Source of the DNA: Saccostrea cucullata
Taxonomy: Eukaryota
Assembly (NCBI RefSeq): GCF_032062105.1
Contig: NW_026934500.1
Span: 310,001-374,000, forward strand
Reading direction: 5' to 3'
DNA: 64,000 bases
Within the stretch, counting starts at the first letter, position 1; the number at the start of each line of letters is the position of its first letter. A model generated the notes under the pieces. That model was not told the origin of the DNA, searched no databases, and was given only the letters and a program-made list of their open reading frames with translations. Position numbers and translations under genes: made by a program. Below are positions 3,434 through 27,822 of this stretch, piece by piece.

Positions 3434-3514
<81 letters not shown>

Positions 3515-6500
3515 TACGTAAAATCAAAAACAGTAAAAATCGACCATAAAACTTGTGAAATGATGGACAGGTTTTAAACGAATCTTTTGATATCCTTATT
3601 TCTTCAGCTGAACTTGTATGTCAACATAATTAACTAGCATGTTGACATAAATATGTTGCATGTCTACATCATTATGTTGCATGTTAACATAATTTATCTT
3701 GTATGTAGGGGGCAGAAATATGCCACCATACAGCTGAGATACAAAAACCCCATATGCAAGAGATTAGGATATATCTAAGAATATATTGTTAAATGTAAAA
3801 GTAAGGGAAATCGACAATTGAAAAGTTAAAGTAATCAAGTTTTCCCCTAAGCTTTGTTGATAGGTCACCATTACCATCTTTTCTAGTAAAATAATCAAAA
3901 TTAATATGAAAAAGATGTTTCAGACTCTGTGGTATCTTAATTCAAGCTTGCTGGGATATATATCTACTTAATTGTTTTAAGTGATAATCATGGTCAAGAT
4001 GAGACTAGAGCAAGTTGTTTTTCTTTCTCATATAGAAATTTTATTCTGTTTCATATGAATACAAAAATAGTCTGCTTATAAGGAAGAGAAATTGGTACCC
4101 GTGGAAATTTGAACAGATTGTTGGAAGACCGATCTCCAAAAACTACAAAGATGTTGTCAATCAGAAAACAAAAAAGAGAGCACAAGATGGAAAGGAAGAG
4201 TGTCGGAACCTTGAAGAAATCAAAGAGACTGTTCATCATAGTTCAACATAGTGTAAAACCACGGGAACATCTGAAGGATAAGATGGCTTCAATGAGTCCA
4301 AAGATCAAAAACGTGTTGTCAGTTAAACAAAAAGCCTGTTTCACGAGGACCTTGCACTAAACTTAATCATCAAGGGATGACCGGGCCAAAGGTGAAATTG
4401 CACTTAATCTTCTGGGTATTTGGCAAAACCATAAGCTTTGTTTTTGTCAAAGTCATGGGAATTTTGTGACGAGTTCTATCCCAAATAAGTGACCTCTCAA
4501 TTGAAACTCAGATCTAGATAGATAAATTATAAAATTTATTACAAAAATAATTTGCCTGTATAGGCACGACTTATTAAAAGTAGCGCTAGCCACGAGACTT
4601 ACAATTCACCACTTCAATATTTTGATTGCTCTACTTTAAATTCGACATGCATACTAGTACGAGCATGTGGTATAGATGTCAAGATTGTTAATCAGTAGTG
4701 TAAATTGTTGTACCTGTGAATGAATACATCCTGTGGAAAATATTCGATCCCCAAACTCATAAACCTCTGTTATATGGCAAACCTAGAGAAATAAAACTTT
4801 AAATTAAGGAAATTCACTGGTGTTATTCGTCATGAAATAATAAAGCTGCATCGAATGACTTGCATGCTATGGTCAACAGAAAATTTTGTTTTAGAAAACT
4901 GAATGATTGATTCACTGTACTATACTACTAGTATTTATACAGAATGAGAATTAACATTATCTTCAATATTTAAGAGAAACAAAGAAAGTATGGTTACCTC
5001 CGATTCTCTACAGTAGGTTATCGTCTGGCAGTCTGAAGCGTTACGTATCTGAGTACACCCTAAACACACGGGACCTCGGTTAACCGGAAACCCTATAAGA
5101 TAGGATATTTACATTGTCATCGGTAAACTTGATTTCTTTTTCTTTTTTCAAGAAAAAAGGGATGTTTGAAACTTTTTGTTAAGAACTTAAGACTCAATTG
5201 TGGATTGAAAATTACAGAAAAAAAAGAATAAACAGAACTGTATAATTACTTTTATTACATTTTCAACTGTGAAATACCGTAATTTATCCATTGAATAAAA
5301 GTGATATCCTGTCACAGTGTGAAAGGATATCAAAATGATTTGTCACGGTCAAATGAAAGAATATCAAAGTGCGGGAAAATCACCAAAAGTGTTGTTAAAA
5401 ACTTTGTTATAAGTTAGAAAACGAGTTTATAAATCATTTAAGGAATGACTCTAATTCTTGGCCAGATTATCGAGTATAATATGGTTTGGGTCAGTTTACG
5501 CTTTATAATCCGCGAAGCGGATTATAAAAAGCGTACCCAAACCATATTAACTCGATAATCTGGCCAAGATTTAGAGTCATTCCTTATTACTTAATTAAAA
5601 AATAATGAAACAACTGTGGATGTAAAATTTTGTTGCTTTTTATGAGTTCAAATTTACCGCGCAATAATACAACCGTAGTAACTGAAGTGATGGGAAGCGA
5701 GGGGAAAAAAGATACATAGATCTAGCAGCCATGATGCTTGTTTACATGAGGTAAGATCGAGCAACTGTTTGAAGTTAAAGGTACATTCATTATATATACT
5801 GGAAATGAGGGGATTGATGGATACAGATGATTCAGCTGGTTATGTGTTACCAAACCAGATTATACAAAATGTTATGCGTTCCTTTTTGGAAATCAACCAA
5901 TGAGAGACAAGAATACAAACAGAATTAAATTATTCTGTCATAAAATAAAACTGCGAAAGTTCCCCAAATATGTTGCTGAAATTCAAGTTTACAATGTTTT
6001 TCCATAGCTATGACGTCTCAATCGCTCAACTATGACGTCATATACCTAAGACTGCATCACAAAAAACACGTAGGCAACCGGAAAATCAAAGAAAATGTAA
6101 TAAACAGAAAATTCAATGTTTTGTAGTGAATAGATTTATTAATTAATATGCACTTGAAATATCCCATCAATTCTCTATATATACATATAAATATTATGTT
6201 GTCAAGGTTATTTTCAACTGGTTTTTAGAATGTTTAATTTTTTAATTTAACTTTAAAAAAGAATTTCCTTTTAGATTTATTAATTAATATGCACTTATAT
6301 CCCACCGTCAAATAATACCAGTATTCATTTAGTAGTACTAATATGACTTAAAATTTTGAAATCCATTTTAGTATAAACAAGTGTTGACATAAGAAAGTTC
6401 TCCCCAGCTCGAGTTTATTAAAATGAAAATATAGATATTAATTTTAAATGTATAAATAAAATTGACAAACCTGGTTCGCCACAACCTTTCGAGTTGCACA

Positions 6501-7036
6501 GATTCGAGTTGCAACATTCAGTGCAAGTTATCGTCTGCATCAATCCGTTTGTATAGGCCGTTATAGAACCGGTGGAATTCTGTCTCACGCATACCTGAAA
6601 AAAAGATTTTAAATCTTCAAAATCAATTTATTTTTTACATGTCCTGAAAACATTTTTTTCAGCAAATACATGTAAATGATCTCAATAAATGTATTATAAC
6701 AATTCATATTCAAAATTCATTAAAATTTATAATTTATGGCAAGTGTCTCAAATGGCCCCTTAAAATGAATTATCTTAATTTTACTTTAAATATAGCTTTA
6801 ATTTGTATAGCTCTACATGTGACCTTTATTGCTCATTTTCAATTTGACCAAAATAATTTAGAAATATGACATCATTAAGGCTCAAGTGAGCTTTTTGATC
6901 AAAATTTGCCCGTTGTTTGTCGTCGTTGTTGTTGTCTTGTCGTAACCTTTTCATACTTTCATCTTCTTCTCAAAAATCACTGAGCCAATTTCAACCAAAC
7001 TTGCTACAAAGTATCCTTGGGTTAAGGGGATTCAAT

Positions 7037-7069
<33 letters not shown>

Positions 7070-10000
7070 AGGGAGATAATTATGAATTAGTGATAAATTA
7101 ATGGTATTTTTAAAAAATCTTCTCAAGAATCAGTGGGCCAGGAAAGAGGAAACTGATGTAGAAGCATCCTCTTATAGTAGATTTTCAAGTTTGCTCAAAC
7201 TATGACCCCCGGATGTAGGGTGGGGCCACAATATAGTATAAAAGTTTAGCACAGGAATACATAGGAAAAAAGTTCTTCTCAAGAACCACTGGGGCAGGAA
7301 GGATGAAACTCATGTTGAAGCATCCTATGGTAATGAAGATTCAAGTTTTACGAAATCATGACCCCTGGGGATAGTGTGGGGCCACAATGGGGTATCAAAG
7401 TTTAACATAGGAATACATAGGAAATAATCTTTTTCTCAAAGACAGCAAAGTCGTGAATGGTCATAGTTATATGGAAGCATCCTCTGAAAGTGTATATTCA
7501 AGTTTGTTCAAATCATGACCCTCGGGGGTAGGGGCGCAACGGGGGATCAAAGTTTAACATAAGAATACATATGAAAAATATATAAATCTTCTTCTCAAGA
7601 ACAACAAAGCCATGATTGGTCATAGTTAAACGGAAGCATCCTCTGGTAGTGAAGATTCAAGTTTGTTCAAATCATGACCCCTGGGGCAAGGGTGGGGCCA
7701 TTATGAGTGATCAAAGTAGGATTACGAAGAAAAAAAAAGCATTTTTAGGAAGTATAGATTTAAGTTTGTTCAAATATCTCCCTCCCCCTCCTCCCTCGAA
7801 CCCGCTTTTATAATATATTTAAAATTTTCAATACTAAAGTTAAACTAATTTTTCGCCGATGCATAGCTAGTTGCTCAGGTGAGTGATGTTGCCTCTAGGC
7901 CTCTTGTTATTATAAACAAGAGGCCTCTGGTAGTGAAGATCCATTCGTTATTATAAATAATGGGAGGATAATTCCATTTTTCGAATGTTCATTCCATATT
8001 GGATCCAAAAAGTTCTCTTATAGAAATCAAAAATTGTTTTCTCGAGTATAAAGTGTTTTGCATCACATATAAGGGTTTATATTATACATGTAAGTAGCCT
8101 AATTTTCTCACATCATTCAGCATACATCCTGAGTTGTAGCGAATTCCATCGGATGAAGCAACTTTTTCCACGAAGCAAACCTAAAATTAGATAACAACAA
8201 GTGTTTAACTTTGACAAAGTGCAGTATTTAAGGTATATTGAACAAATTTTTACTGCAGAAATACTGATACCAAAGTGACAAGATTAATTTCGCATCTGCA
8301 ACAAATATATTATATATTCATAACTTTGACCATTCAATCAATTCAAAACATTCATTATTAAGTATTTTTCTTCTATTTTTTACTTTCTTTTATGAAACCA
8401 TATTACACCTCAAAGGTTTATGTCTTGAAATTGCCATTTCTTTATAGCCCTTGACTGCAAACTATTTAATTGGCTGTTATCCATGGTCCATATTGTCAAT
8501 TCTTGTCTAGTAGTAAATAAAGTTTGCCATTTGTGGATTATTTTTTTTATTCACCTTTTCATTTTCATGCAAAATCCAGATATTTTATGAGCAAAAGTAT
8601 TTTGCTGCTTTATGTGACCATAGTTCTACTTGCCTCGTTTTCAGCACAGTAGGTGATACCGTGACAGTGACGTGGTTGAATGACGTTGACACACTGCAGA
8701 CACATCAAGGCTAATCCTGGAAAGAAACAAGTACAAGCAATATTATACAAAAAATCTTCCTCCATTGTTTGCAAATGCAAAGTAAAATTAAGTGAAAAGA
8801 CTTTTGAAAATATAATTGCATTTGAATTCATTCTGACTGTACAATATATATTTTTCTGTCGAATATTCCTGATAATCACTTTTTTAAATCACAACAAAGT
8901 TTACTGTTTCTATCTCTATATATTGTTTATAATTGTCACGTATTTTGTAAATAATACTTTGTTGTTTTCTTGTATCATTTAACCTTAAGCATAATAAATC
9001 AATGCACCTTTTAGCTTAAGAAAAGTGAACTTTTAAAGAAAATTTAGTAATTTAAATTTAAATTGTACTTCGGTTTTAAATCACCTTATCGACTCCAAAA
9101 TAGAAAAACGAAACGCAAAATAAAAATTGAAATTAAAAAAAATCTAACCATAAATAAGCTACATATCTTAAGGTAGGTCACTCGTCAGCTATTTGGAAAA
9201 GTTCACGCAGAACCTCTTACTTCAAAACTATTTATCAATATTCCATTTTTTAAACATATTTAATTTCAACAAAGTTATTGTTATAACATTCAACAAAAAA
9301 ACTGCTCAAAAAGCTACAAAGAAACAAGATTTTTGAGGGACTATTTTTTGTGGTGGAAGGATATTTAGCAGATAATTCTGCAAATCTGCACATTTATTAG
9401 ATTTAATATCTTAGACTTTTAGCCTCACATACTTTTACTCGGAGAATATTTTCCATTATGATATTGCTAGGAATATTTAATAGAGGTCTTAATTTATATT
9501 TTTAGAAAAAGTTTTACACTTCCTTCAACAAACATTGCCAAAAATGAAGATATGTCAAATAAGTCAATATAAAATTAACACCATTTTTTGCCTGAAAATC
9601 ACATATTTTGACCAATATTTCAAAATTAACATCACTGACCCCAACTTTTTCTTTCATTATTTTAAAGTACTCGATACTTGTGACTGATCAGCACTTAAGT
9701 CGTAAAAAGCTTGATATAAGAAAATCTTTTATTGCCTATTTAGTTTTTTAATACCCCAAAATATGTTACTTTTTAGTGCAAAAAGGTCACACAATAATTT
9801 ACGCGCATTAATTTGCAAGATTTGTTCAATGATGAATATTATTCAAAATATTTTAAGCAAAATAAGATATGTTTTGCCATGGTTACATCTGATAAAATAT
9901 AATAAAGGCTTAAGTAATTAACCAACGAGTTAAAGTTTAAGTGCAAAAAGGTCAACTTCATTGTACCGTAAATCAGTAAGATGAACACTGACCCCCTTTT

Positions 10001-10895
10001 TTCTCCGCGATTTTGAGTCACTCTAAATGAGTACTTATCCAAAATATACTTCTCAATAAATCCTTGATTTAACAAATTTCACGAGTGACATACCTTAAGT
10101 TGTTTTTTATTCTGACAATTATTCTTACCTTGTGACAATTCTGCACTCAGTAAAAGCAATATTGAAACCAGATCTAAAATATTTTAATACATTCATCACT
10201 TATTATTTAAACGTGATGACATCTCATGAATTTCTCTCACTTATGAAGCAATATTCCAATATCATCTGTATGAGGTTTTTGTCTCCTATTTGAATTTGAT
10301 CTTCGTTTGATTAATTTAAAAAAAAAACGATTAATTATCGATTATTAACCCACAAATTAAAAAAAAAGCACATCAACAGTTTCGTTTGAAATTATCATTT
10401 TGGAAGTCCTATAGTCGATACAATGATCTAATCAATATAATACATCTCTCATTATGTCAAATCCCGACTGACGGTTTCATACTTAATGTAAGGCCAATTT
10501 TCATACAATAAAACCTCGGATTTTCCCTTTTACCAATCATTACATGGGGCGGGTGTGACCGGTCTGTCCATAGAATGCTTACTCCTCCATGGCACTTGCT
10601 CCGTCTAATATGTTTTCAGAGGTCCGTATTTCCTTCGCCCCAAATGTGCATTGTTTATATGAACTGTAAACTTGAATGCTATTCGTTATCTCCATATAAC
10701 ATTATGAAGAAAGCACGTGGAACTTAAGAACTTCTAATGTACCAGAGAAGAAAATAATTACGTAGTATGCATATTTATAAATTAAATGTTTCATACAATG
10801 TATGTTAACAGAGTAATACTAAGAAATAAGTAGTTATGACTAGTATGATTTGTTTCTTATTATATTATTGAGATCACTTACAACTTACTGTTCAT
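1276..10895 (-). CDS. Paralog A: secreted tandem three-finger (Ly6/uPAR-like) protein with His/Thr-rich insert; possibly truncated or pseudogenised at the 3' end
   Basis: Hand-assembled exons with consistent phases: putative ATG micro-exon 10895-10889 (tentative); signal exon ~10173-10129 (LVSILLLLSAELSQG); 8716-8634 (LALMCLQCVNVIQPRHCHGITYCAENE, GC donor); 8180-8112 (VCFVEKVASSDGIRYNSGCMLND); 6594-6471 (VCVRQN...TCTECCNSNLCNSKGCGEPG); 5092-4998 (FPVNRGPVCLGCTQIRNASDCQTITYCRESE); 4782-4714 (VCHITEVYEFGDRIFSTGCIHSQ); 1468-1276 (LCSTIAPRPY...Thr/His-rich...APIG). The likely next exon starts at 312 and has an early TAA. Confidence 0.8.
1981..2345. repeat. ~29-bp minisatellite (gcagtgtatgatgagacattgggggac) with an internal poly-G run
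   Basis: About a dozen degenerate tandem units are visible; poly-G at ~2248-2265. Confidence 0.85.
2365..4165 (-). mobile_element. Degraded Penelope-like retroelement (RT remnant plus 3' tail) interrupted by younger insertions
   Basis: The minus strand near 4050-4165 reads FLIDNIFVVFGD..FQQSV..GT....ADLFLYSYE-like across frameshifts. The 3' tail at 2365-2640 matches other copies in the window. Confidence 0.75.
2673..3535. mobile_element. MITE with TACTGT...ACAGTA ends and ~90-bp TIRs; a (TA)n expansion sits in the right TIR
   Basis: tactgtatttgattttacataatcac...agaaaggg...tttacacagggtcgatctcggaaata is mirrored at 3400-3535; (TA)n at ~3441-3509. Confidence 0.75.
5439..5586. repeat. ~148-bp hairpin palindrome with GCGAAGC apex
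   Basis: taaggaatgactctaa...atcc-gcgaagc-ggat...ttagagtcattcctta; the arms are nearly perfectly complementary apart from one short bulge. Confidence 0.9.
6877..7908 (+). mobile_element. Helentron/HINE-type non-autonomous element carrying ~165-bp satellite monomers
   Basis: 5' box ggctcaagtgagcttt plus a gtc/gtt microsatellite, tandem monomers (ttcttctcaagaac...gattcaagtttgttcaaatcatgacccc), and 3' box caggtgagtgatgttgcctctaggcctcttgtt. This resembles oyster Cg170-bearing HINEs. Confidence 0.8.
9172..10094. mobile_element. Non-autonomous DNA transposon with TTAA target duplication and GG...CC ends (Kolobok-like)
   Basis: ttaa|ggtaggtcactcgt ... acgagtgacatacc|ttaa. Confidence 0.8.
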
Positions 10896-11857: not shown

Positions 11858-14800
11858 TCAACCACTTGGGGATCCAGTGTAATAGTGAGGTGTTGGAGTT
11901 ATTTTACCTGGAAAAAAAAGATTAAAGGTTAATCTTGTGCTCTACCAAAGATTGCACTTATAATTTGATTTGATTTTATAAATTGATTTTATGAGCTATG
12001 TTTTAGCTGAACATAAATCCTTACTGTAGTGTACGCAGACATCATTACACAAATCTCCTCGACAACAGTGTTCACAAGATGTGAACCTCTTATGTCTGTT
12101 GTTATCTCTCTTGCCAACAATAGGAACGGGATCTGCATCAGTTGTGGTAGATAAAATGGGTTTTGGTGAAGGTGACCACGGAGGCAGTATTGTTGTCATT
12201 GCTCTAGTTGTCCCTGGTGTTATTTGTGTTTTTGTTCTAGTTATTCTTGTTGTTGGTAAACGTGTTGTTCTAGTTGTCCTTGTTGTTGGTAACCGTGTTG
12301 TTCTAGTTGTCCTTGAAGTCGGTAAATGTGTTGTTGCTTTTCTTGTTGTCGAGTATGTGTGATGATGCATGTTCGATAAATCCACCACAGCGTGGTTATT
12401 GGATACTATGCTTATACATTGCTGATTATAATCAACAACAACAATTTACAATCAAATTTTTATTACAAAAATTTTAAACTTAAACTATATGAGAAATTCT
12501 AATTCTACCTGAAATGGCATGCATCCTGAGGAATAAACTTTATCACCAAATTCTGATTCCTCCTTGATGAAACACAACTGAAGTTGAAATAGAATACATA
12601 TGCAAAACTAGAGTTTTAAAAATTATATCAACATAATTTTACAGAGCGTTTTATCAAACATGTCCCGACTTTGCAGTTTCCCAAAAAAAGTTTTTTTTAA
12701 TAAATCTTCAGTCAAGATGAATCGAATTTCCGTTAATATAAATTCCCCTATTGTTTTCGTAATGAACACGGAGATTGTGTATGAGCGGCGACATGGGTTC
12801 GAATTCCAGTTGGGAACATAGAACATAGAAGCATGTCCCTTGAATGAGACCGAATGAACTGAAATCCAATGTTTCAGTATATGCTAGAACGAAAAAATCC
12901 CTCACTCACTGCTCTCTGATAATAAGAGCTTAGTACAAATCTAAATTTGTACCTTTCAGTAAAATATACTCAAATGAACCTCTAGCAAACGATAGTGTCA
13001 TGTTAAATACATTCACCTCAGAATCTCTACAGTGAGCTATTTGTCGACATTCCTGACTGTCAAAGTGCTGAGTACAAGCTAAACAGACAGGTCCTCTACT
13101 ACTCAGTGGAGGGTAACCTAAAACAAATAAATATCATGTATGACTTAATTTATGGAGGGCACCAGGGGTAGTCTAAAACAACAACAACAACAAATATCAT
13201 CCACCATGTATGGACCATTTATTGCACTAAGAAAGCTGATGTTTCGAAGAAGATCTAAAAAATGTTTTGGAACACAGAGGTTGCCAAATTTCCAATATCC
13301 TATCTAATATACGCAAAATACAAATAATACAATTTCAAATTGTGAGAAGAGCCAACTAGTACATCCGAAACAGGGGTGAGATCATTTAATATTGAGAAGT
13401 AAGCATTCCTTTTCGGCCGATCACTCCAGCTTTGTGCTGTTTGTAACCAAGGGGGAAATGGAAATTCAGAAGGCATGAAATGGCAAACGTGAATGTTTCT
13501 AACAAAGAAATTTTGCAAATGACCAATGACAAGGTAAGTAACTTTACGAGTTCCATTACTATTGAAAAAACAGCTGTCGATGTTGTCAGAAAATATAATT
13601 ACTCAACAACTTGGAAGAAGGTAAAACTCAAAAGCTAACTTTAAGCCAGGTTTTACTTTCAAACATGGTCATTGGATCGACCCTAGAATTTGGAAGCTTT
13701 AAACGAAATTGTTGATATCCGTTTATCATCAACTTATTTGTCGATAATTTGCTTCCTTTTAGAAATTGTTCGAAAGTAGAAAATGCTCTTATCTTTCGGA
13801 GACATAAATTTCTAATGCAAAAAATATAGCGCCACTAAAGTGTATATAAATAAATTTCCACAGCAGCAAAAATATTTTAAAGAAATTAAGCAAAAATTTA
13901 GAGCGTATAAAGTTAAATTCCCTCGAATATTCTAGAGAAAATCGGTGAAATTGATGCCCAATTCTTTTTAAATAAAACTCATTCGATACAAAAATTAGTT
14001 AAATTACTGCATGCTAGTGATTGGAAATGCTTCATTTGAATGACTCTATGTTACCTGGTTCGGTGCATCCTTTAGCGTTACATAGGTCGGTATCACAACA
14101 TTCTGTACACGTAGGTGGGCGGAGATTACCGTCATCACTCCCGTGTATGTGAAGAGTTTGATTCTGTTCTATACAAACCTAAGAGAATTATTCATAAGGA
14201 TATATATATAACATATAAATATATTATGTAAGTAGAAAATATGGATCATAATTATACTTTTTTTTAAATCAAAAAGTCGGATGAAGTTTAACTCACTTGT
14301 CTTTGAAGGCAGCCCGTGTTGTACCTTACACCATAAAGTGATTCAACTCTTTCTACGAAGCAAACCTTTAAAAACAAGATGTTCAGACTAATGTCTCCTC
14401 ATATGAAAGAGAACATGTCAATGCTTTCGAATAAATCAAATACTCTTCATCAAAAATGTTTGTGCAAAGATAATGAAAAGTGACCCAATCGTCAAAAAAA
14501 TAAAAGAGGACAGATATTAGATGATAGACTTCGAAAAGAAAAGCTCACAAGAGGAGCACTTGTTTGCTTTTGTTGTTTACGTCCCTCACGAAAATTTTTC
14601 AGTCATATGAAGACGCCACAACTTGCCGATAGAGAGAGCTCTGCATATTTTGTCTTATACTCGGCACTTACGGCCATTGAGAAGTGAGAAATCTTTTTCT
14701 TGCCAGCACCTACTGCAACACGGGAGCTCGGTTTATATGGTCTCATCCGAAGAGTTTCCACGTCCCATAGTGGATTTTCGAACCCGCGAGGTAAGGATGA

Positions 14801-15036
14801 ACTCCTTACTTCGTGACTCTAAAAAAAAAAACCATGTTGCAGTAAAACGCCCTAACCACTGCGTCACGCAGGGCTTTCCAAAACAATTTGTAGGAGTACT
14901 TAAGGGATTTAAAAGAAGGCAATAAAAAAAATTATAGACTTTCTTATACGCACCTCATCCTCTGCACAGTAAGTTATACTGTGACAATGGCGGGGCTGGA
15001 TAGAGCCTCTACAGGATAAACACATTAGTGACAGAA
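11858..15036 (-). CDS. Paralog B: tandem three-finger (Ly6/uPAR-like) protein with basic Thr/Arg mucin-like insert and GKR/RHKR sites; 5' exon(s) not resolved
   Basis: Exons 15036-14954 (LSLMCLSCRGSIQPRHCHSITYCAEDE), 14365-14297 (VCFVERVESLYGVRYNTGCLQRQ), 14178-14055 (VCIEQN...TCTECCDTDLCNAKGCTEPG), 13117-13017 (YPPLSSRGPVCLACTQHFDSQECRQIAHCRDSE), 12577-12509 (LCFIKEESEFGDKVYSSGCMPFQ), 12421-12025 (QCISIV...TTRTTRLPT repeats...PIVGKRDNNRHKRFTSCEHCCRGDLCNDVCVHY), 11907-11858 (SKITPTPHYYTGSPSG*). All introns are GT-AG and in phase. Confidence 0.85.
14560..14875 (-). mobile_element. tRNA-derived SINE
   Basis: The minus strand has A-box (gcagtggttaggcg) and B-box (ggttcgaaaatcc) motifs; body and tail match the copy at 63085-63308. 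Confidence 0.7.
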
Positions 15037-17601
15037 CTGAGGAAGAAATACAGAAGTACTGGAATAAACAATATAAACATACAGAATTCAAATTCTCAGT
15101 AGAAATTATTCTTAGCGTTTTCTCAGTCTAAAATTTAATTCCAAAATTTCAAATTTCTGATTTAAAGCAAGATTTTTTCAAATACAAAACCACTTTATAC
15201 CAAGTTTGATCGAGAATATGTTGAAAAACACAAGAATGAGCAGCATTTCTACAAAAGTAAATAACAATTGTTAAACGTTGATATCATTAACAAACCTGTA
15301 AGCCACAGTATTGTAATTTTTGATTAAGATATAATATGTGACTTAATGTTTTAGCTATCTGTAGCATACAAACAGATACTGGCTTACCGCTCTTCTTTTT
15401 GGCAAAATACACATTCATAGCTGTAACATATTTCCTTCATAAATCACAAAACATCGTTTTTGATTTTAAACTTCTCTTTCAGATAATGGAAACTGCAGGA
15501 AGCAGGTCTATAAAAGGCACAATATTATTATGGAAAAGGAATCGCAGAGGTGTAAAACGTCAGACAGACTTTTACTTATACTTACTCGATCGTCCATAAA
15601 AAGTAGGTCAACACAGGTGAGTACCTTTCGATAGCGACTGTATTTTGACTTTAAGATCGCCTGTTTGTGTCTAAGTACAAAGATCACTTTCTCCTCTCCG
15701 AATTTCTATGTTAGAATAATTTTGAAAGTTAATGTAAATGTTTCCGGTCCATTTTCAGTGACTGGGTCATATTTTGAAGGGACGTTAAACGTTTTAATTG
15801 TTTAAATTAAATTCGCCCTACCGAATACTTTCACTGAGTAAAATTTGACCCAAGCTCAATTTCCTCGACAAAAAATAGCATACAAAGTCCTTGAATGGGA
15901 AAGAATTCAAGAAAAAAGGAAAGAAATTAATAATTAACATAGCTTAAATATGTTTAAAAAAGAGTGACCTCGTATTTGAACCTGTTTTTTTTTTGTAACT
16001 TGACAGTTTTGACATAAGACTTTTTTACTTAATATTAAATGTTTCTTGATACATATATACTGCTCTTACCCAAAACTGTTCTTAGACCAAGAATATTAAC
16101 TGATATCATACATGGCTACAACAAGGGTTTGATTGTTTTTCATGACTCATTTCAATAACCTGACTCTTTTTGTTATGACCTAGAAAGTTTGAGCGAACCA
16201 TCTATTTGGCTGATTGTCTGTCCACAATATTTTTTAAAATTCTATTCCGTTGTTATTTTGTTCATATTTCGATGAAAATTGGTCCTGTAGACTAAAAGTG
16301 TTGCAATGATGGTTTATCAATTTTAAAATATTTGTGAAACCTTTTGGAAAACTTATCTTCTATAGTTTTGTCTTATTTGAAAAAATTTTGGTGCGCAAGT
16401 ACTGGTATTCTTCCCTACGATATGATGTTATTTACACTAATTGTCAATTATATATTGTCGTTTGGATGTGTGCATGCATCGCTTCATTAACAAGTATGAT
16501 ATGCTTGATGTTTAGTAGGAGTGAAATAGACAATTTAATATAAAAATACCATATTTTTCCATTAACACCATTTGCAGATATGTTTTTATTCATATATCAA
16601 TGCAGAATGCAGAACTCATAAAAACACTACTTAATGAAAAGCAGAAATAGCTTAATTTCTTGGTCTTTAATTTGACATTTAAATCTATCGATGATGATTC
16701 ATCAACTTACAAATTTATTTTCGTTTGTACATTAATTCGACTTATAATTTGAACTAGAAATAAAGACACCACAGGGTCTGACGATTTTATATTTAGATAT
16801 TTTACTAGACTGTAAAGAGAAATACACTTACGACAAAATAGCGAGAAAACTTTTTAATTAACCATATATTTTACTCCTTACCTGATACTATATTTTACCT
16901 TTCGACCGTTCCTAACACTCCTAATATGACCTTGGAATATCAATTTTAAAAATTCTGATGTCCATAGTGGTGACATATTAAAAGAACACACTGGTGTTAT
17001 ATATTTAATTTCCTATTGTACATATTCATCTCATTTTCATCATTGCTTTCTTTATAGCCAAACGGTTTAGATTGTATTTGATCTTCGATTTTTTTTTCTT
17101 TTGTATTTTCTCGGATTGTGTCCATTCGACTACACGCAGTCACATGAGAGTTGTCTAGAACCGTTGAATTGTAAATAAACTATTGGGATTAGGAGTAAAA
17201 TATTTGGTTTTTAACTGATATCATGGGATACTTACTCCCCCTAGGCATCTGATCCCATCTCTGTCATATCCAACGGTTCCTGTTTATGCATGCTCACGAT
17301 TTGCTTTGTTTACTGCATTTATGTGATTATCCGTTTTACGTTATTATCATCTCTTACACATTAACTTATTTATATTTTTATTGCATCCCCTCATTCAGGG
17401 GAGTTTAAGCTTAAATACAGAAAGTTAAAGGAAACATTCAAATTAACATATTTCACAGTGAAAATTTTTAAACACTAGCTTAACACCGATAGAAGGCTTT
17501 GTTTTCAGTGGAGTCTACATTTCAGCTGTTCAATTTTTGATCCATACGTGAAATACGTTTTTTACTTTTTATACATTGTTGATTGTTTAAAACACTGATC
17601 A

Positions 17602-18866
17602 CTAATGCGTTAATTTTAGCCCCACTGGATATCCATATCCTTGATTATGCTTAAAACCATACGCCATTAGTCCAAATGGATGTCCCTGTAAATTTTCTAC
17701 ATCATGGGAATGCAGTTGACTCAAAGGAATATTTATTACAACGTAGGGTGACCCATTTAAGGCAATTGTTTCCAGAGTAGCGTTAATTTGATTAAACGGT
17801 TTGTCGTCAAGGACAAGTCCCCCTTCTTGGCCCTTCTTTGTAATAATGGAAATGAAATGTTTGTATTCACCATCATCAGAAACACTGAAGTGATAATCGC
17901 TTTTGAATTGCTGGATAGCTGGGGTAACTAACATTGCACCACTAGCGTTCTCCTTTACCGGTTTCATATCTTCAGTCATTTGGAGTACGAGAATTGGCTT
18001 ATTGCTCGAAATACAAATTGATTTGTTAGTCATTGTTTCGAATTCTTTGAAAGATCCTGCTGTCGGAAGATTTACAATTTTACCGTTTACGGCCACTTGC
18101 GTTCTGTCCTCTGAAGCAATAATCTTATAAGTAAAGGTTTGTCTGTTTTGCAGCTTTGGAATTATGAAATCTGTACCTAAAGCATCTGTAGGTGGAATCA
18201 TTTGTATAACCTTTTGAGTCTCGCAGTCTTGAGTACATACTGTTGATGGAATAACTGTTGATTTAGCTCCAGAAAAAACAGCCACTGGTTTGGAACTATC
18301 GATTACTGTACCTGTCAAATCGGTTCCATTGACCTCTAGTTGAAAAGTCTCGTACTGATTTAAAGTTATGTTGAAGCTTTCCCCATTTTCATATCGGTAG
18401 TTTCTCCATGGACTTATATAAACATATCTGTTTTTGTCCTCGAGTCTGAGGTTAAATCTTACTTTTGTGTCATTATGTAGCGCTACAACAGTAATAAAGG
18501 AGGGGCTGTCCTTCGTTCCTTTGGCTGATGCTGCCACGTAACGGTTAGACAAGTCAGGGACAGGAATCACAGAGAAGGCAGTGTCACTACCATTTCTATA
18601 CTCCATTACATGGACAGATATGTTAACGTTAGATTTGACGTAAATTCCTTTCTGTTCATTCCAAGGCACTGAGGTTGCAGTGGATGGATCTAACGATATA
18701 ATGTTTCTACCCTTTGTTAGAGTGGTATTAATGAAGGATTTGGTATTTTCAAAGTAAACACTGATCATTCCATTATTAGGGGAGGTAATCACCATGGAGA
18801 CATTATCTGCATTCTGTAGATTTTTGTGCTTTGACAAGGCAAGTAGAAACTCTGAACCAGATAGGC
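17602..18866 (-). CDS. Terminal exon of paralog C: IgGFc-binding protein (FCGBP) N-terminal-type domain
   Basis: 421-codon exon with family motifs LNQYETFQL, DLTGTVIDSSKPVAVFSG, QMIPPTDALGTDFIIP, ISSNKPILVLQ, PAIQQF and PFGLMAYGF...GYGYPVG; acceptor caatttag at 18867. Confidence 0.88.
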
Positions 18867-21800
18867 CTAAATTGAATAAAGACGTGTGAAGACGATATGA
18901 AATATACATGTAGTGATTGGAAGTTAACATTTTACAAGAAAGTTAATAAGAACAAAGAAAATAACTTCATTTATTTGTGGATATATGAATGTCGCCCCCT
19001 TTTTTTGCATTACTTGGCGAGGAAAAGTTAGAAGACTGCAGGGAAAGGCATTTTTAAGTTTAAAAGGTTTTTTAGCAAGGTCGTTTAAAGACGTATACTG
19101 CACCTGTATATGTAACTGGAAATGCTGTTGGTTTTGTTGTTGTAGTCCTGGAGGTAGTTGTAGTAGGATGTGTGGTAGGATTGGACGTGGTACGAGTAGG
19201 AGATGGTGTGGTAGGATTGGACGTGGTACGAGTACGAGATGGTGTGGTAGGATTGGACGTGGTACGAGTAGGAGATTGTGTGGTAGGATTGGACGTGGTA
19301 CGAATAGGGGATGGTGTGGTAGGATTGGACGTTGTACGAGCAGGCATATGCGTGGTAGGATTAGATGTTGTACGAGTAGGAGATGGTGTGGTAGGATTCG
19401 ACGTGGTACGAGCAGGCGTATGTGTGGAAGGATTAGATGTGGTAGGAGTAGGAGATGGTGTGGTAGGATTCGACGTGGTAGGTGTGGACCTTGTAAGAGT
19501 TGATATAAGTGTTGCAGATGTTGTTTGGTGATCAGTACTTGATGTAGGATTCGATGGCGGAGAAATGGTAAAGTAGGCTGGTGTAGGTGTTAAAGGACCT
19601 GTTCAAAATGAGGTCAAGAAAGATAAGCTAGGTGAGTTTTGTTTTAAATGTAGGAGGTATTTTGAACATACAAAAATGTTTTAATATTGTATGTTCAAAA
19701 TTCGTATTCTACAGAGAATAGAGAGTGGATTTCCTCTTTGCACTATGCTTGTTTTTGATTTTTCGACACGAATCCAAAGTAAAATTAGGTACACATTATC
19801 ATGGTTTTAATAAAATAATANNNNNNNNNNNNNNNNNNNNNNNNNNNNNNNNNNNNNNNNNNNNNNNNNNNNNNNNNNNNNNNNNNNNNNNNNNNNNNNN
19901 NNNNNNNNNNNNNNNNNNNNNNNNNNNNNNNNNNNNNNNNNNNNNNNNNNNNNNNNNNNNNNNNNNNNNNNNNNNNNNNNNNNNNNNNNNNNNNNNNNNN
20001 NNNNNNNNNNNNNNNNNNNNNNNNNNNNNNNNNNNNNNNNNNNNNNNNNNNNNNNNNNNNNNNNNNNNNNNNNNNNNNNNNNNNNNNATACTAAAAAAGA
20101 ATTAATCTTTTAGCTTCTGTTATACTGCATTTCAAATAAGCTTTATAGTTAATGCTTTTTAAAAAAAATATTAATGGAGGTACTGTACTATTAGGGCTGC
20201 ACAAATCATTGCAAAGATCTCCCCTGCAACACACATGACAGGAGATGAAGCGCTTCCGTCTACCATTCAAAATGGCTGCCCTATATGATGGAGAGGCCGG
20301 CGTATTTTTGGAATCTGTAAGTTTTATTGCAGATAGAAATTGAAAATTCGCACTCACACAATTCATTAAATTTCTTATTTGTTTACTTGTAACCTTGTAA
20401 AATCTCAAAAACTGTGATGAGTTGATAAGATGCAAACCAAAATTTGTAATCGTAATTAAAATTGATATTTTTTTCTTTTATCTTTAACATTTCTTAGAGC
20501 AGAATTTGTGAACTTACCAGTGTATCCCTTTACAAGAAAGTTACTTTGATCAGACAAAATTGATATTTCCGTAATGTCAGGAAAATTTGAGGTTAGTGGT
20601 AAGGAAGAGTACTTTGAAGATCCATCGACCATGTGGATAAATTGGTCGGTTATCCCGGTTGGGACAATTTTTGAGGTAGGAGGTAAGTTTGTAATTAGTC
20701 CATCAACCATATGTATATTGCTGTCTGTTATTCCGGTTGGTACTTGGGTTGAGTATGGCGAGTTGGATGTTGATTCATCAACCATATGTATATTGCTGTC
20801 TGTTACTCCGGTTGGTACTTGGGTTGAGTATGGTGAGTTGGATGTTGATTCATCAACCATGTGTATATTGTCTGTTATCCGGTTGGTAATTGGTAAGTTG
20901 GATGTTGATTCATCAACCATGTGTATAATGCTATCTGTAATTCCAGTTGGTACTTGGGTTGAGTGTGGTGAGTTGGATGTTGATTCGTCAACCATATGTA
21001 TATTGTCATCTGTAATTCCAGTCGGAACGACTGTGGAGTATGGAGACAAAGTGATAGTTGATCCATCAACCATATGAATATTGTCATCTGTGATTCCAGT
21101 TGGTTGATCAGTTTCAAATGAGGTTACTGTTGTGCCTATAGTTGTTCTTGTTTGAAGGGATATCGTAGGTTTTTCTGTCTTTGAAGGTCTTGAAAAGTGA
21201 TGAGAATTAGACAAATCTCCAATTGCTTGGTTATTCTGAACTACACTCAGACATTGCTGCAAGAAAGCAGCGGATTTCAAACAACTAATATCACAATCAA
21301 TTATTTATCAATTCTTTTCGATAAAAAAAATCAAATTTATTACTTGAAAAGGCAAACATCCTGTTGAATAAATTTGGTCGCCAAATTCCTCCTCTTTTTT
21401 AATGTAGCATAGCTGAAAATTTATTAGGCATCTGTTATCTAATATTGCAAAAATACGTCATTAATTTATCAAAGAATATACAATAAATTATATTGTACCT
21501 CAATACTTATGTTTTGATCTATTAATATATGAGATGCAAATTAAAATTTCTTTGGAGTACTTTATCAGATTTATTTAAAAAATATCTTATGAATACATTA
21601 ATAGATTAGGTCTTTAAGCATTGAATCTTGAGGCACAAGTTTGTAATTTGTGTTGTTTATTACGAGTACCTCAGAGTCTCTACAGTGGGCAATCTGTCGG
21701 CACTCCCTTGCATCATCATGTTGGGAACAGGCGAAACAAATTGGACCTCTCACAACCGGATACCCTTTTTAATCGAATCATTTATTGAGTTAAAAATTAA

Positions 21801-24800
21801 GTATTTTGCTCTTTTATGAGAAAGGTTAATTTTTTAGAGCCATAGGATCACGTACATCATGTACATAATATTAATGTACAAACCGTGATCTTTTGGTGTT
21901 GGCCTTTACAATGTAATGGATATATGGGTTTATGGAGGATATAGAGGATGTTTACAGTACATACTTAGAAACTCTAGTGTTTGCCTTTGAAGATATAATA
22001 GTCATGAGCGTTCACTGGTAGTTGTTTAGTGAACATACCTGAATACTTTAGTGTTCGACATAAGGAAGAATATGTTGGATTTGTTGATGGGTTTTATGGA
22101 GGTTAGCGTACATACCTATATATACTTTAGTGTTCGTCTTATTAAAGAATATGTAGGATTTGTGGGTATTGTGGATGTTAGACTATATACCTGAATACTT
22201 TAATGTTCGCCTTAAGAACTAATAACCGTCTGTTCTAATATAAATTTTCACTTTTTTTTTTTTAAAAACTTTGATCTATTGCACCAGCTTCAGATGGAGA
22301 ACAATATGAGGTATGAAGCGCTGCTTATTTTTTTTTCATATTTGATTTTTATATCGAATCATGATATGAAAAAATCTTAACGCAGAAGATGGGAAAAATA
22401 ATGATTTATTTTCACAGCATAAAATTAAAAATATTAGTTTTATGAAATATATGGAGATAACGAACTATTTTCAAGCTCAAAATTTTATTTTACACATTAC
22501 AAAATAGGAGCGGAGTAAACACTGAATACCAAAACATCACAGGTTGGATCAGATGCCATGGAGAAGTGAGCATCCCCTGTCGACCGGTCACACCCGCCGT
22601 GTGCTTCTTGTCTTGATCAGACAATAACAAAAAACATCCATGGACAACTCAGTATGTAAAAAATAGACTTACAATCAGTATGAAAAATCAGTCATTTGAC
22701 TTAATGGTAAATTGTATTTGCTGACAATGTCATTGTGTTGACCATATTACTTACGAAATGATGACTGTAAAGGAGGCAGCTGATATTGTTGTTTCATCAA
22801 CTTGTTTGTCAGTAACTTACCTCGTTTTAGAAATTGTACATATGCAGAACATGCTCTTCCGTATCGAATCAACCGAGAGATATAAACTCCGTATGCAGGT
22901 GGCAGAGGTATACTGCTGCATAAGTAAGGAAAGTTGACGATTGAAAAGTTAAAGTCATCACGTTTATTATGAAGCTGTATATGAAAATAATATTTAGTAT
23001 CATGACTATCAATTTCATATTAGAAAACTTAATAAAGGGCTGCTTCGTAAGTCAGAATTTTACAATTTCGCAATGTAGTTCTAAGAGAAGAAAACATCTA
23101 GTAGCAAGAATTATCTTTCTTATGAATTTTTTTTCGTTGGAAAAAAATGTTTAAATCGAAAAAAAAAATCAAATTTGGTACTTAAAACATGAAACAATTT
23201 GTAATAGGTCCTTAAAAAGATAGAACTAATTTAAAAGACTTTTGATACTGAATCTAAATCTTTTTTGTTCAATACAATAAAAATGATTACAATTTGAAAT
23301 GTATAGGTAAAGGAAATTGAAGGTAATGTTTGCATCACATGTCAGTCAAGCTTGATCAAATTGACTGCTGAAATCTGATGATGAAAACTTTGATTAATTT
23401 TCGTATTTTACTTCGAAAGTTATCTCTCTTATCAGAGGGTCGGTACCCCTTAAGGAAGAATATGCTGGGTTTATGGGTGGGTATAATAGAGTTTAAATAG
23501 TGTACATACCTGAATACATGTACTTATAAATTTGTGTTCGCCTTTAGGAAGAATATGGTGGGTTTGTGGGTGGATATTAAAGGATGTTTAGTGAACATAC
23601 CTGAATACTTAAATGTTTGCCTTTAGAAGGAATATGTTGGGTTTGTGAGTGGGTATTATAGGATGTAAGTGTACAGACCTGGTTCCCCACAACCCTCTGC
23701 ATTACACAGATCGGACTGACAACACTCAGTACACGTGTACGGAACGGGGTTTCCTTCGCCATTATTTTTTATGACATTTGTTTTGTTTTGCTCTCTGCAA
23801 ACCTGAGTGTATAATTGAAAAAAAAATCAATACAATGTCAAAAAATATCATTCTAGATATGCAACAGCTTTTTAAAAATAAATATTTTTCAGAATCTTAT
23901 TTTTAAAAAAGGTTATCAATTTGTTAATTCAAGGTGCAAAATTAATAATTTTGATGCAACGATTCTTGAATACAAATAGAATTTTTACAATTTGGGCAAA
24001 GAGAAAAATTGAACCTTATTGACACAATGTGAAATACTGTAGAAGTACTTTTTTCCGCGTGGTATTAATTTACGCTATGTACGCGGTCACATATTTTTCG
24101 CGGAAATTTGTCCAAGCGTACTTAATATAAATGCAAGGCATAGAGTGACAGTCTAAGAAATCCGCGTACTTTTCAACCCGCGGATTAAACGGAAGTTGAG
24201 ATTCCGAGGAATTATGACCCCGTAGAAAAAAGTATGTCAACAGTAATTGTAAATGTCAAAAAAAAAAAACCTCAGAAAAGTACTTGCTCTGTTTTGGAGA
24301 CAACCCATGTTGTATCTGACGCCAAACATAGACTCCATTCTTTCAACAAAACACACCTATTAAGAAGAGAATTCTAAAAAGCAGCAATGTTGCGAGTGAA
24401 CACAGAACAGTCAATAAGATCATTTTATAATGATAATTTTTTATAAGACGACGTCTTGCTAACAGAAAATGTAGAAATATTGTATTCTATTGCTACTACT
24501 ATTTTGTGTTTACTTTCGAATTTTAACCAATCATGATTATAGTGTTTTATGAGAAAACAAGTCAAGAAAATTCATGTATCTGATACTTTGAAAATATGAA
24601 TTCTGGAATCTGATAAATTTTTAAAAATAAAAAGCTCTAAAATGAAACAAATTTGCAATTCTTGTTATATTTTTTAGATCTATACTCTTATAAAACAGCC
24701 TAAAGATGTTCTTTAAAAAAAAGTGAAAATATGTCTTTAAAATTATTTTTTACTGACCTCGTCCTCGGCGCAGTAGGTTACTGTGTGACAGTGCCGAGGT

Positions 24801-27800
24801 TGTACTGCGTTGTTACACTGCAGACACATCAAGGAAATCCCTAAATTCAAACTCTTATTCCAGTCATCCAGTTCTCAAGTCAATATAGCTATGTACATTG
24901 GTGTTTTGCAAAATCGATATTAGTATTACAATGTCGAAAAAATTACAATTGAGTGTTTACTTATTGACACCTAGATTTTGTAAGCTTTACAAAAAATGTC
25001 AAAAGTATAAAAAGATTTCATACCTTTGTCAAACTGAAGTAGGAGAACAAGCACGGTACATGTTATAAATTCTGTAATCATTAATACGATTGTGATGCTG
25101 ACATATGTTACAATTACAGAAACTAATTTAACTGTTCTGGAAAAGAAATTTGTGTTTTTTCATCAAATAAAGTTATATAACTGCAGTCAAACAAACAGCT
25201 CGAAGGAGTAATAGTTTATCGATTGAAAAACTTTCAATTATTATTAAAATAGTGATTATGAAAACTCTGTTGGAAGACTCAGGAGTATGGCAACAGTTAC
25301 ATCAATTACAGGCTCTAATACAAGATTCTTTTTTTGTCCCCATTCAAGTGATTAATAGTACAGACATTCAGTCCAGGTTAAAAAGGGGCCAAATATACAA
25401 AAGTTTACAAGGTAAGAATTTTTTGCTGTATTAATAATTACAAGAGACCCATGGAACGCATTGCTCACATGAGCATTTTGGCTAAGAAAAGTAGAAATCA
25501 GGGGCCCTTTTACAAAAGAACGTACGAATAAGACCATAAGCCTTGGTTGATTATAAAAAATAATTATTCTGTTTTTAATTTTATTTAAACAAGTATTGAG
25601 TATAACTAACGTATATTAAAGTATTTAAACAATAAAACTGAATGGTATAAGGCAGCATTTTTTTTAGTCTTACTATTGCCAATGGTATATGATAAGCCAT
25701 ATTACTGATATCAAGGTAATTCAGGTATCTGGGCTCTTCATATGTCCGGGACACCTGACAAATTGACTGGGAACCAAAGCCCAAAGGTACTAGTATATGG
25801 AAGCATCTATAGGGTAATATGATATTGTGATCAAAATTTTACAAAGAAATTTGTAGATAAAAACCTTTTTTTTCAAAAACAGCAAATCCATGATCACATT
25901 TTATGTGGAAGTATCCACAAATAGTATAGATTCAATTCATAACCCCTCCCCTACAAACTATTAACTACTGAACTGGGGTTTGTTTTACATAAAAACTTAC
26001 GACTAAGAACAAATTTTAATCCTGCATAATTTCTAATTAACATTATATTGACAGTGGTTTTAATCTTTTGAAAGGAATGTATTGAGTTAAGTTTACAAAG
26101 GCAATTTTAAACAGAAAATTTTTTTAATGCCCTTCCATTGAATTTGATCAAACTTGAAATACCTTTACCCGAGAGTACTTTGTGGCAAGTTTAATTGAAA
26201 TTGACCAAGTGGTTCTTGGGAGGAAGTCGAAAATGTGAAAAGTTTAAATGTTGAAAAGTTCATATTTTATTTATTTAATATATACAAGCTAAAAAAATAT
26301 TTTAAATATTGTACATGGCAGTTGCCAAATGGAAACAGACGTCAACGCATTTTTTTTTTAATTTTAATTCTTTATACCTGAAATGAGAAGAAAAATGTGT
26401 TATAGAAAACGAAAATTATGTCATTATTACGATTGCTTGATCTTTTATAAACCTTTTTTGAGAGTTTTACCAATTTTGCTGGATATTTAGTTTATTAATT
26501 GATAATTTACCTAGACAACGTCAAATTTTCAAGTCATACGTTTTGTGAAAACAGTCTTAAACGCGTATATTATTGACATAGGCTGGGGAAAAATGCATTT
26601 CATTACTGGTTTTCCATAAAGGTGTGGCTGTCTTTTGAGGGTTTTGTTTTAAGTGTTTATCCCCCTTGACAATTTAAACGCGTTAATGGACGTTGTCGGC
26701 TGACGTACTGTTCCAAACATTGCTACTGAAATTGGAATATCATATGGAAAGATGGAGAATATTTTGATATATGAGTGAAAAATACTTGAATATATTTAGA
26801 AAAGGGCAGCATTTTGTAGAATTAGTATTCGATTTGGTGAGATGCTTCTAAAACGTGACGTGACATGTCTAATTTGACGAAACTGATAGGTTCACAACTA
26901 TTCATTTTCAGAAACGTGTGACCTTGAAATTGGAACGTGGTGAATTTTCCAATATTGTATGCTTTCATATCGAAAAAATTTTAGAAAGAAAGGATCAACC
27001 CTCGTATATACAAGCTATTGTAAATAGCAAAACAGGTAAGATGCAATAATTCATGATGGAGCATTAATTACGATGTTTGAAATTTGTTGCAATTTTACTA
27101 TTTTAACTGAAAATTATAAAACAGGTAAGATGCAATAATTCATGAAGAGAGAAATTGTTGCAATTTTACTATTTCATCTGAAAATTATAAAACGAGAAAG
27201 GGAGAGTGAGGGGGAGAGAGTTAAATTTAACAATACTTACATTTCACTTTCTCTAAAGATTTAATAATAAATTTCAAAGAAAAAGACATAAAGGATTATA
27301 AACTTCTTCTGTTCATATTCAATTCAATAAAATTACTTATTAGAAGATTTAATTGAAGCCAAAATACTCTTCTGTCGCCCTGTATAAAAATTGATTTCTT
27401 AAAAATAATACTTTGCATGCCATAGCAGAGAATTTTTTAATCTTGCTGATCATAAGTATTTGAGTTTAAAATTACACAGAAAATCAACAAAGTGGCATAT
27501 TTTTAAATCAAAATATCCCCCACTCCAAAAAATATAGTTCGGGAAATATTGCTCAAACACCATTTTTATCATGAAGAGGAAGAGCGAGGTACATGTAAAT
27601 CTAGATCTATAGGCTGTTGTATTTTATGTCTTTATCAACAAGTTGCATATTATATTAAGATAAAGAACGAAGAATAATTTGAATAATGAATAATTGGGAA
27701 TCTATGTAACACTAGGCTTTAATAGGTTGGAAAGTTTGCAGTGACCTTTGCTGTTTACTCATTACATTGTTACCTACATTTTACGTAAGCAGAAAAAAAA

Positions 27801-27822
27801 TGAAGCAGTATCTACCTTTCAT
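17602..27822 (-). CDS. Paralog C: secreted mosaic protein (~1040 aa) of two three-finger-like modules, two mucin-like blocks and a C-terminal IgGFc-binding protein N-terminal-type domain
   Basis: Putative ATG micro-exon 27822-27816 (ATGAAAG|gt, tentative); 25071-25024 (EFITCTVLVLLLQFDKG); 24840-24758; 24356-24288 (GC donor); 23802-23679; 21764-21670; 21412-21344; 21256-20518 (acidic 25-aa repeats); 20314-20189 (ILNGRRKRFISCHVCCRGDLCNDLC); 19598-19104 (12-aa TTSNPTTPSPTR repeats); 18866-17602. Phases are consistent throughout; the N gap falls in the intron between 20189 and 19598. Confidence 0.85.
19821..20087. other. Assembly gap (N run) in an intron of paralog C
   Basis: 267 N bases. Confidence 1.
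21920..23678. repeat. Intronic 60-80-bp tandem repeat in two blocks (21920-22220, 23450-23678) separated by a Penelope-like fragment (22450-22970, minus)
   Basis: Unit agtgaacatacctgaatactttagtgttcgcctt..gaagaatatgttgg recurs in both blocks. Confidence 0.75.
24035..24245. mobile_element. Short MITE with TACTGT...ACAGTA ends
   Basis: tactgtagaagtactttttt ... aaaaaagtatgtcaacagta imperfect TIRs. Confidence 0.6.
25440..26295 (-). mobile_element. Degraded Helentron/HINE-type element
   Basis: acaagagacccatggaacgcattgctcacatgag terminal box and tggcaagtttaattgaaattgaccaagtggttct monomer remnant. Confidence 0.55.

Follow-up and report, generated by a model that had tools for sequence, protein, structure and literature searches.

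Three-finger domains of the Ly6/uPAR (LU) type are usually taken as compact single-chain units, and we know of no LU domain that is cut inside a finger. In colubrid three-finger toxins, a dibasic site serves to remove an N-terminal propeptide that lies outside the domain (PMC12390062), while mollusc LU proteins joined to C1q, fibrinogen-like, Ig and MAM domains have been described by Paramonov et al. 2026 (PMC13719153). Here we report on a window of 64,000 nucleotides from the oyster Saccostrea cucullata (RefSeq assembly GCF_032062105.1, contig NW_026934500.1, positions 310,001 to 374,000), an AT-rich stretch containing a tandem array of three related minus-strand genes, C, B and A, each of which encodes a signal peptide and two twelve-Cys LU modules. 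We propose, with a probability of about 0.68, that bivalve LU precursors are cut by a proprotein convertase within finger III, which would convert the module into a two-chain domain with a tethered tail, amidated where a Gly precedes the site, and that in one oyster clade this tail has become a stalk.

Finger III, counted from Cys7 to the first Cys of the CxxCC segment, is 21 residues long in module 1 of A, B and C; in module 2 it extends to 78 residues in A, 113 in B and 269 in C. The long loop of gene B ends in Gly-Lys-Arg, three further residues and R-H-K-R (12115-12086), and that of gene C in Gly-R-R-K-R (20264-20250); after shuffling of the loops, both motifs fell within the last 20 residues in 0.08% of trials for B and in 0 of 100,000 for C. 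The initial annotation had given the same lengths (21 residues in module 1, about 113 and 269 in module 2 of B and C) and the same pairing of a Gly-basic with an RxKR motif at the loop ends, and the exon models uphold both. It had named B and C only; paralog A shares their design, its 78-residue loop closing just outside the window. The range that it gave, 12025-21256, stops short at one end, 21256 being only the start of the C insert exon within a gene that spans 27822-17602.

These counts depend on exon models whose boundaries were set from coordinates, reading frame and splice sites, the spliced joins being used for the frame check, the residue counts and the tree. All acceptors are AG and all donors GT or GC, with one GC donor in gene C (24288, exon 4) and one, in a different intron, in gene A (8634, first LU exon), and the models translate on the minus strand free of stops. 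The gene C product comprises 1039 residues: signal peptide, two twelve-Cys modules, a Thr-rich stalk and an IgGFc-binding domain, the exon for which (18864-17605) scores 176.7 bits against Pfam PF17517 (cut-off 25.6). Gene A also has a C-terminal IgGFc-binding domain, encoded by an exon about 75% identical to Crassostrea orthologs and to Ostrea orthologs, and gene B reaches a stop soon after module 2. The long loop of gene C could in principle stem from a wrong exon join, since it requires one intron, or an assembly gap could conceal a break; we regard this as very improbable. The layout of gene B is free of splicing assumptions, as Cys7, insert, basic sites and closing Cys residues all lie in one exon; moreover, splice phases match, and the same layout recurs in RefSeq models of Ostrea edulis, Crassostrea virginica and Magallana gigas and in intron-free Logan contigs of the B ortholog. 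The gap (19821-20087) is downstream of the loop and harmless to the claim, because it sits in an intron past the closure of module 2 (exon end 20189, next exon 19598) and orthologs span the junction. Mis-splicing and a gap artefact were rejected on these grounds.

The combined content of Thr, Ser and Pro in the insert is 44% in B, 36% in C and 36-48% across orthologs, and the inserts fit the usual description of mucin (PTS) segments in being rich in Pro, Thr and Ser, tandemly repeated and low in predicted local distance difference test score (pLDDT). The earlier description of the insert as Thr-rich is apt for B, which is Thr/Arg-rich, but less so for C, where the loop is less mucin-like (14% Thr, 15% Ser, 10% acidic) and consists in part of 15-residue repeats. 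The repeated motif, Pro-Thr-Gly-Ile-Thr ... Ile-His-x-Val/Ile-Asp, is present in six copies in gene C (20645-21104) and in one copy in the Crassostrea C orthologs; conserved, acidic and unlike plain mucin sequence, it may be a binding element. O-glycosylation of the inserts would be expected from their composition only. The first 20 residues past Cys7 (12421-12360 in B; 21256-21195 in C) are conserved in A, B and C orthologs, end in Leu-Ser-Asn/Ser-x-His-His/Asn ahead of the variable stalk, and are partly helical in structure models.

Assignment to the LU fold draws on several lines of evidence. Module 1 of the O. edulis A ortholog scores 26.2 bits against the Pfam model UPAR_LY6 (cut-off 24.8), and two other family members exceed that cut-off as whole proteins; single exons of the window gave no LU match in Pfam, and module 2 with its insert reaches 15 bits. 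Modules with long inserts are missed in annotation because the inserts break Pfam detection. The Cys pattern ends in CC-x4-CN, and the 24 Cys of the two modules are invariant in 80 aligned proteins; twelve per module is two above the usual ten, the extra pair flanking the CC...CN segment. A sequence search of the PDB returned weak matches only (SLURP1, E 0.33). Relatives were sought with paralogs A and B, the 17602-18866 exon of gene C and proteins of orthologs; word-based searches yielded six IgGFc relatives and one LU relative, and Atlas matches, all below 0.9, served as leads only. We rejected a glycosylphosphatidylinositol (GPI)-anchored Ly6 protein as a candidate identity, there being no C-terminal hydrophobic GPI signal or transmembrane helix: the maximum 19-residue hydropathy in B and C is below 1.0, and a transmembrane-like stretch occurs in 1 of 144 homologs.

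Structure models were made for two orthologs as stand-ins, the B ortholog and module 2 of the O. edulis C ortholog. AlphaFold2, run on the B ortholog with an alignment of 80 sequences, returned a pLDDT above 90 in both cores, about 90 in the closing segment and about 50 in the insert. Residues 98-265 of this model, spanning the insert, can be superposed on PSCA over 73 of its 76 residues (Z 7.4, root-mean-square deviation (rmsd) 3.1), and its module 1 aligns with GPIHBP1 (Z 9.4, rmsd 2.3). The O. edulis C ortholog shows the same behaviour: in the model of its module 2, which has an insert of 214 residues, residues 5-284 align with GPIHBP1 over 70 residues (Z 7.5, rmsd 2.7), and Prod1, PSCA and Lynx2 are matched across the insert as well. 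The top 38 rows of the structural matches are all of the LU fold and cover the whole target domain, with middling Z values. The split module 2 is thus predicted to close into a full three-finger fold, and the distal CxxCC...CN segment, which had been expected to pair with the upstream half-domain, completes the domain in the predicted structures of both orthologs.

The basic site extends far beyond the three genes. Among 20 other loci examined in this genome, 12 have hydrophobic residues followed by Gly and Lys/Arg-Arg (or Gly-Arg) in a short module-2 loop, and at several of these C1q or IgGFc-binding exons follow the LU pair. When 1.84 billion representatives were searched with a query ending before module-2 finger III, 348 matches were obtained, 172 of them at E up to 1e-10 (50% identity clusters). 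The named members (Ostreidae, Mytilidae, Pinctada, Mercenaria, Mya, Mactra, Dreissena) are all bivalves, and the partner domains in the family are C1q, C-type lectin, Ig, MAM, MIB-HERC2, Sushi, EGF and IgGFc-binding. In the best 150 of the 348 matches, from which 260 modules were parsed, finger III has a median length of about 20 residues and exceeds 50 in just two cases. Of 104 last modules, 55 have Gly plus dibasic in finger III, where shuffling gives a mean of 3.7 and at most 9; for first modules the count is 25/104 (shuffled mean 1.8). The combination is almost never seen in finger II (0 in last modules), and its density is 19.7 per 1000 residues inside finger III against 0.67 outside the modules, a 29-fold difference. 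The fuller motif of a hydrophobic pair, Gly and basic residues is found in 41/104 last modules, compared with 0.2 after shuffling. As the homologs are related, the shuffles overstate significance; the motif nevertheless turns up in both types of module and on many distinct branches.

The composition of the site carries a strong convertase signature, in keeping with the initial proposal that it is of the convertase type. The basic run ends in Arg in 102/103 cases, KR outnumbers RK by 132:19, and the following residue is S, N, D, E, Q or A in 84/103 cases and never Pro; an Arg-terminal run, a preference for KR and a small or polar next residue are known preferences of proprotein convertases. Half of the loops (61/122, against 27 when shuffled) have a second basic site downstream, past a variable spacer, and the distances from site to Cys vary from 3 to 92 and from 2 to 54 residues. 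In the window, the furin-type R-x-K-R is present in B and C, A having Arg-Arg pairs only, and the loop is disordered in the models. One might instead see the motif as an uncut, exposed basic patch at the tip of finger III that binds glycans, membranes or a receptor, a thought encouraged by the fact that the fingers of known LU proteins are binding surfaces. We consider this unlikely: a patch would have no need for Arg in last position, for KR over RK by 7:1 or for small following residues, and neither the second site past a variable spacer nor the variable distances to Cys would be expected of it.

The initial annotation had tied the processing site to the mucin insert, an association that does not hold. 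A tree built with finger III left out places six long-insert proteins in one clade (Shimodaira-Hasegawa-like approximate likelihood ratio (SH-aLRT) 99), nested in a 43-member group (SH-aLRT 87) in which all members have the motif. The simplest order of events would be that the site arose first and that the insert was gained later, a single time, in the common ancestor of the oyster A/B/C cluster. We accordingly rejected a site special to the insert, given that it is family-wide in short loops and predates the insert on the tree. Among the paralogs of this genome, L004, L005, L006, L009 and L010 carry between one and three C1q-like exons after the LU pair; L021 and L022 have three or more LU modules, tandemly repeated in L022, with the Gly-Lys-Arg site in the last one only; and the pairs L005/L007, L009/L010 and L016/L017, on separate contigs, look allelic or recently duplicated.

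Orthologs in Ostrea, Crassostrea and Magallana retain both the long loop and the basic site. Those of A and C in O. edulis are XP_048732985.2 (loop 89) and XP_056008160.1 (loop 214), and that of B in M. gigas is XP_019925966 (loop 104); C. virginica XP_078335486.1 is apparently a fused model of a C-like gene (loop 177) and an A-like gene (loop 81). The two parts of the latter appear to be neighbouring genes, and the IgGFc-binding domain of its C-like half is truncated. Both sites are kept in M. gigas B, as Gly-Arg-Arg, two residues and R-Q-K-R, and O. edulis C keeps Gly plus R-K-K-R. A Gly directly before the basic site is present in A, B and C of the window, M. gigas B, O. edulis A and C, and C. 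virginica A (with a single Arg). The comparison of A, B and C orthologs shows that the basic site before the closing strand is invariant, and the amide-donor Gly common but not invariant. The insert itself is poorly conserved except at its two ends, and in O. edulis C it measures 214 residues, or 132 in isoform X4. In a further O. edulis RefSeq isoform, X3 (XP_056008163.1), the closing exon of module 2 is skipped, which leaves seven Cys and no basic site, with the link to the IgGFc-binding domain intact.

Several observations weigh against the proposed cleavage and amidation. The Gly-basic site is dispensable, as 33/104 module-2 loops are without it; two C orthologs (C. virginica XP_078335486.1 and one from oyster run SRR14865106) have the polybasic site with no Gly, and the A orthologs keep two sites, the first of which is reduced to Gly-Arg in C. 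virginica A. Closure was favoured in the models, since Cys columns served as anchors of the alignments given to AlphaFold; the tree was made by a quick method and is weakly resolved, with many forks open; and a convertase may cut only poorly in a loop that is closed by a disulfide or densely glycosylated. A basic run is found in every oyster ortholog seen, whereas conservation of the full Gly-K/R-R motif breaks down in two C orthologs, and amidation as a general property of paralog C was not borne out.

These losses bear most directly on a reading in which the cut is real and amidation irrelevant, a possibility that we take seriously while leaning away from it. The hydrophobic pair and Gly would then do no more than make the convertase site flexible (aliphatic P4-P5, Gly P3), cleavage would act by opening finger III or by loosening the C-terminal domain, and the mucin would be tolerated growth of an unconstrained loop. 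Retention of the polybasic site in the two C orthologs that dropped Gly fits this reading, as do the variable length of the insert (78-269 residues, and 214 versus 132 between O. edulis isoforms) and its poor conservation outside the ends. It accounts less readily for the 7.5-fold enrichment of Gly directly before basic runs, for the two preceding residues being hydrophobic in 80% and 69% of cases against a background of 22%, a preference seen in distant bivalves, and for the long inserts being kept in all three paralogs and three oyster genera.

The best reading, in our view, is constitutive cleavage in the secretory pathway with a tail that is often amidated. In the precursor, the LU module would fold and form its disulfides with finger III intact, after which a convertase would cut the loop in the Golgi or in secretory granules, usually at hydrophobic-hydrophobic-Gly-Lys/Arg-Arg; a second basic site often follows, and in such two-site loops the short spacer would be dropped. 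The cut would divide the module into an N-chain with seven Cys and a C-chain with five. As the first six Cys pair mutually in the usual LU topology, the chains would be held together by one disulfide of Cys7 and by the central sheet, and the mature module is probably two chains joined by one disulfide; this pairing is the one that topology and Cys parity lead us to expect. If the basic run has a Gly before it, the N-chain would be trimmed and amidated, so that its free end becomes a hydrophobic amide. The segment before the site appears to have grown once, within the oyster A/B/C clade, into a disordered stalk of 80-270 residues, probably O-glycosylated; being N-terminal to the cut, this insert would stay attached as a tail from Cys7, often with an amidated hydrophobic tip, while the C-chain would bear the second stalk and the IgGFc-binding domain.

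The initial annotation had gone further and pictured a protease-activated "lasso". Taken as a latent ring, this would mean that the mucin loop keeps the domain covered until it is opened by a protease from outside. The insert would indeed be a disulfide-closed ring in the modelled precursor, and the O. edulis isoform that skips the closing exon hints at regulation. Yet the site predates the insert and mostly lies in loops of 15-30 residues able to mask little, R-x-K/R-R sites are as a rule cleaved constitutively in the Golgi, before secretion, and there is no sign of threading. Nothing indicates a masked state or an outside trigger, the family pattern runs against them, and a latent ring therefore seems quite improbable to us.

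Secretion, mucin stalks and lectin-like partner domains suggest recognition or scaffolding in mucus or at the body surface as a likely role, a guess from architecture. More tentatively, and we would not favour it at present, the family could represent a bivalve-wide class of two-chain three-finger domains with prohormone-like maturation, in which the tethered hydrophobic C-terminal amide acts as a ligand, displayed in oysters on the end of a mucin stalk, and the lectin-like C-terminal domain is redox-releasable from its single disulfide. Subtilase and copper-monooxygenase exons are present in the genome; they were left unassigned to furin or PAM and given no weight.

Features of the three genes are collected in the table below. 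A short-chain dehydrogenase gene, which we take to be retinol dehydrogenase-like, follows gene A (L001:3770-region equivalent; L002:1019-9612, minus strand); synteny is conserved, as such a gene also begins downstream of the A ortholog on Logan contig L024. The LU-family locus L013 contains fragments (17-2927, minus strand) that are presumably of a Bel/Pao-like retrotransposon. Elsewhere in the window, 58686-60581 on the minus strand holds a multi-exon gene for a secreted protein in which the domain is preceded by a signal peptide and a long, basic, pro-like stretch that contains Arg-Arg; by its motifs we assume a resemblance to the CAP/SCP family, and its first exon, queried alone, gave no CAP match in Pfam. 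Two 469-bp copies (44762-45229 and 47202-47670), 99.4% identical and 2.4 kb apart, reflect either recent local duplication or assembly redundancy.

Table. Features of the LU gene array (window coordinates unless a locus is named; strand in the third column)
Feature	Position	Strand	Remarks
Gene C, whole	27822-17602	-	
Gene C start exon (Met-Lys)	27816..27822	-	inferred from frame and splice sites
Gene C hydrophobic signal-peptide exon	25024..25071	-	
Gene C LU module 1, three exons, GC donor 24288	23689..24826	-	finger III 21 residues, no basic site
Gene C LU module 2, Cys1-Cys6	21344..21764	-	exons 21764-21670 and 21412-21344
Gene C exon with Cys7 and bulk of 269-residue insert	20518..21256	-	Ser/Thr/Pro-rich, partly acidic
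Gene C 75-bp tandem repeat inside insert exon	20645-21104	-	
Gene C closing exon: insert end, Gly + R-R-K-R (20264-20250), CxxCC...CN..C (20240-20199)	20189..20314	-	content matched in O. edulis XP_056008160.1
Assembly gap in gene C intron downstream of module 2	19821..20087	.	orthologs join flanking exons directly
Gene C second stalk, after module 2	19104..19598	-	mucin-like, 38% Thr, 36-bp repeat
Gene C C-terminal IgGFc-binding domain exon	17602..18866	-	Pfam PF17517, E 8.5e-52
Gene B, whole	about 15246-11858	-	
Gene B candidate signal-peptide exon	15201..15246	-	best hydrophobic candidate, in-frame join
Gene B LU module 1, three exons	14065..15022	-	finger III 21 residues
Gene B LU module 2, Cys1-Cys6	12509..13117	-	exons 13117-13017 and 12577-12509
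Gene B single exon: Cys7, 113-residue Thr/Arg-rich insert, both basic sites, closing CxxCC...CN..C	12025..12421	-	ortholog M. gigas XP_019925966
Gene B Gly-Lys-Arg; R-H-K-R	12115-12107; 12097-12086	-	
Gene B short last exon and stop	11858..11907	-	no further domain; fits M. gigas C-terminus
Gene A, same two-module design, insert exon 1468-1276	1276..10173	-	ortholog O. edulis XP_048732985.2
Gene A closing exon (Gly-Arg-Arg, then Arg-Arg)	L001:9222-9124		beyond left end of window
Gene A IgGFc-binding exon	L001 about 8532-7270		beyond left end of window

Our observations can be set against four described systems. With the Ly6/uPAR proteins (GPIHBP1, CD59, LYPD6B, LYPD1/Lynx2, PSCA and Prod1) the oyster modules share the fold (Z 7-9.4) and the terminal CC-x4-CN; they differ in having twelve Cys, no GPI or transmembrane anchor, and a finger III that contains a processing-type site and as many as 269 disordered residues. 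The colubrid toxins likewise have a convertase-type site in a three-finger precursor, the oyster site lying instead between two Cys of the domain; an identity as toxins was rejected, as nothing suggests that the oyster proteins are such. The mollusc proteins of Paramonov et al. (PMC13719153) very probably belong to the same bivalve family, as in matches found here the LU pair is followed by C1q, fibrinogen-type, Ig and MAM domains. In the main text of that paper the terms furin, cleav-, convertase, insert, mucin and IgGFc are all absent, so that the combination of LU with IgGFc-binding domains, the finger III site and the insert are undescribed there. A literature search, with many subscription journals outside its coverage, found no description of LU cleavage inside a finger, of this family or of LOC109619698. 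What emerges, judging from sequence, is a conserved and likely processing site within finger III of a bivalve LU family, more widespread than initially noted, and an oyster clade in which that finger has become a mucin-like stalk.

Proinsulin and relaxin fold as single chains, are cut at paired basic residues, lose a spacer and end as chains held by disulfides, and in the precursors of amidated neuropeptides Gly-Lys-Arg acts as amide donor. Together they may be viewed as a works-like parallel to the proposed maturation of the oyster modules, which differ from proinsulin and relaxin in their unrelated fold, in a single predicted interchain disulfide and in a long segment that would be retained instead of released. 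A conserved processing signal in finger III would add a maturation route to the three-finger domain, in a family that numbers 170 clusters or more (E up to 1e-10, 50% identity) and whose every named member is a bivalve, and the oyster inserts indicate that this finger accommodates hundreds of residues. If the proposed cleavage is true, the abundant LU-C1q, LU-lectin, LU-fibrinogen and LU-IgGFc proteins would have to be produced and analysed differently, recombinant forms made in bacteria or left uncut being perhaps non-native.

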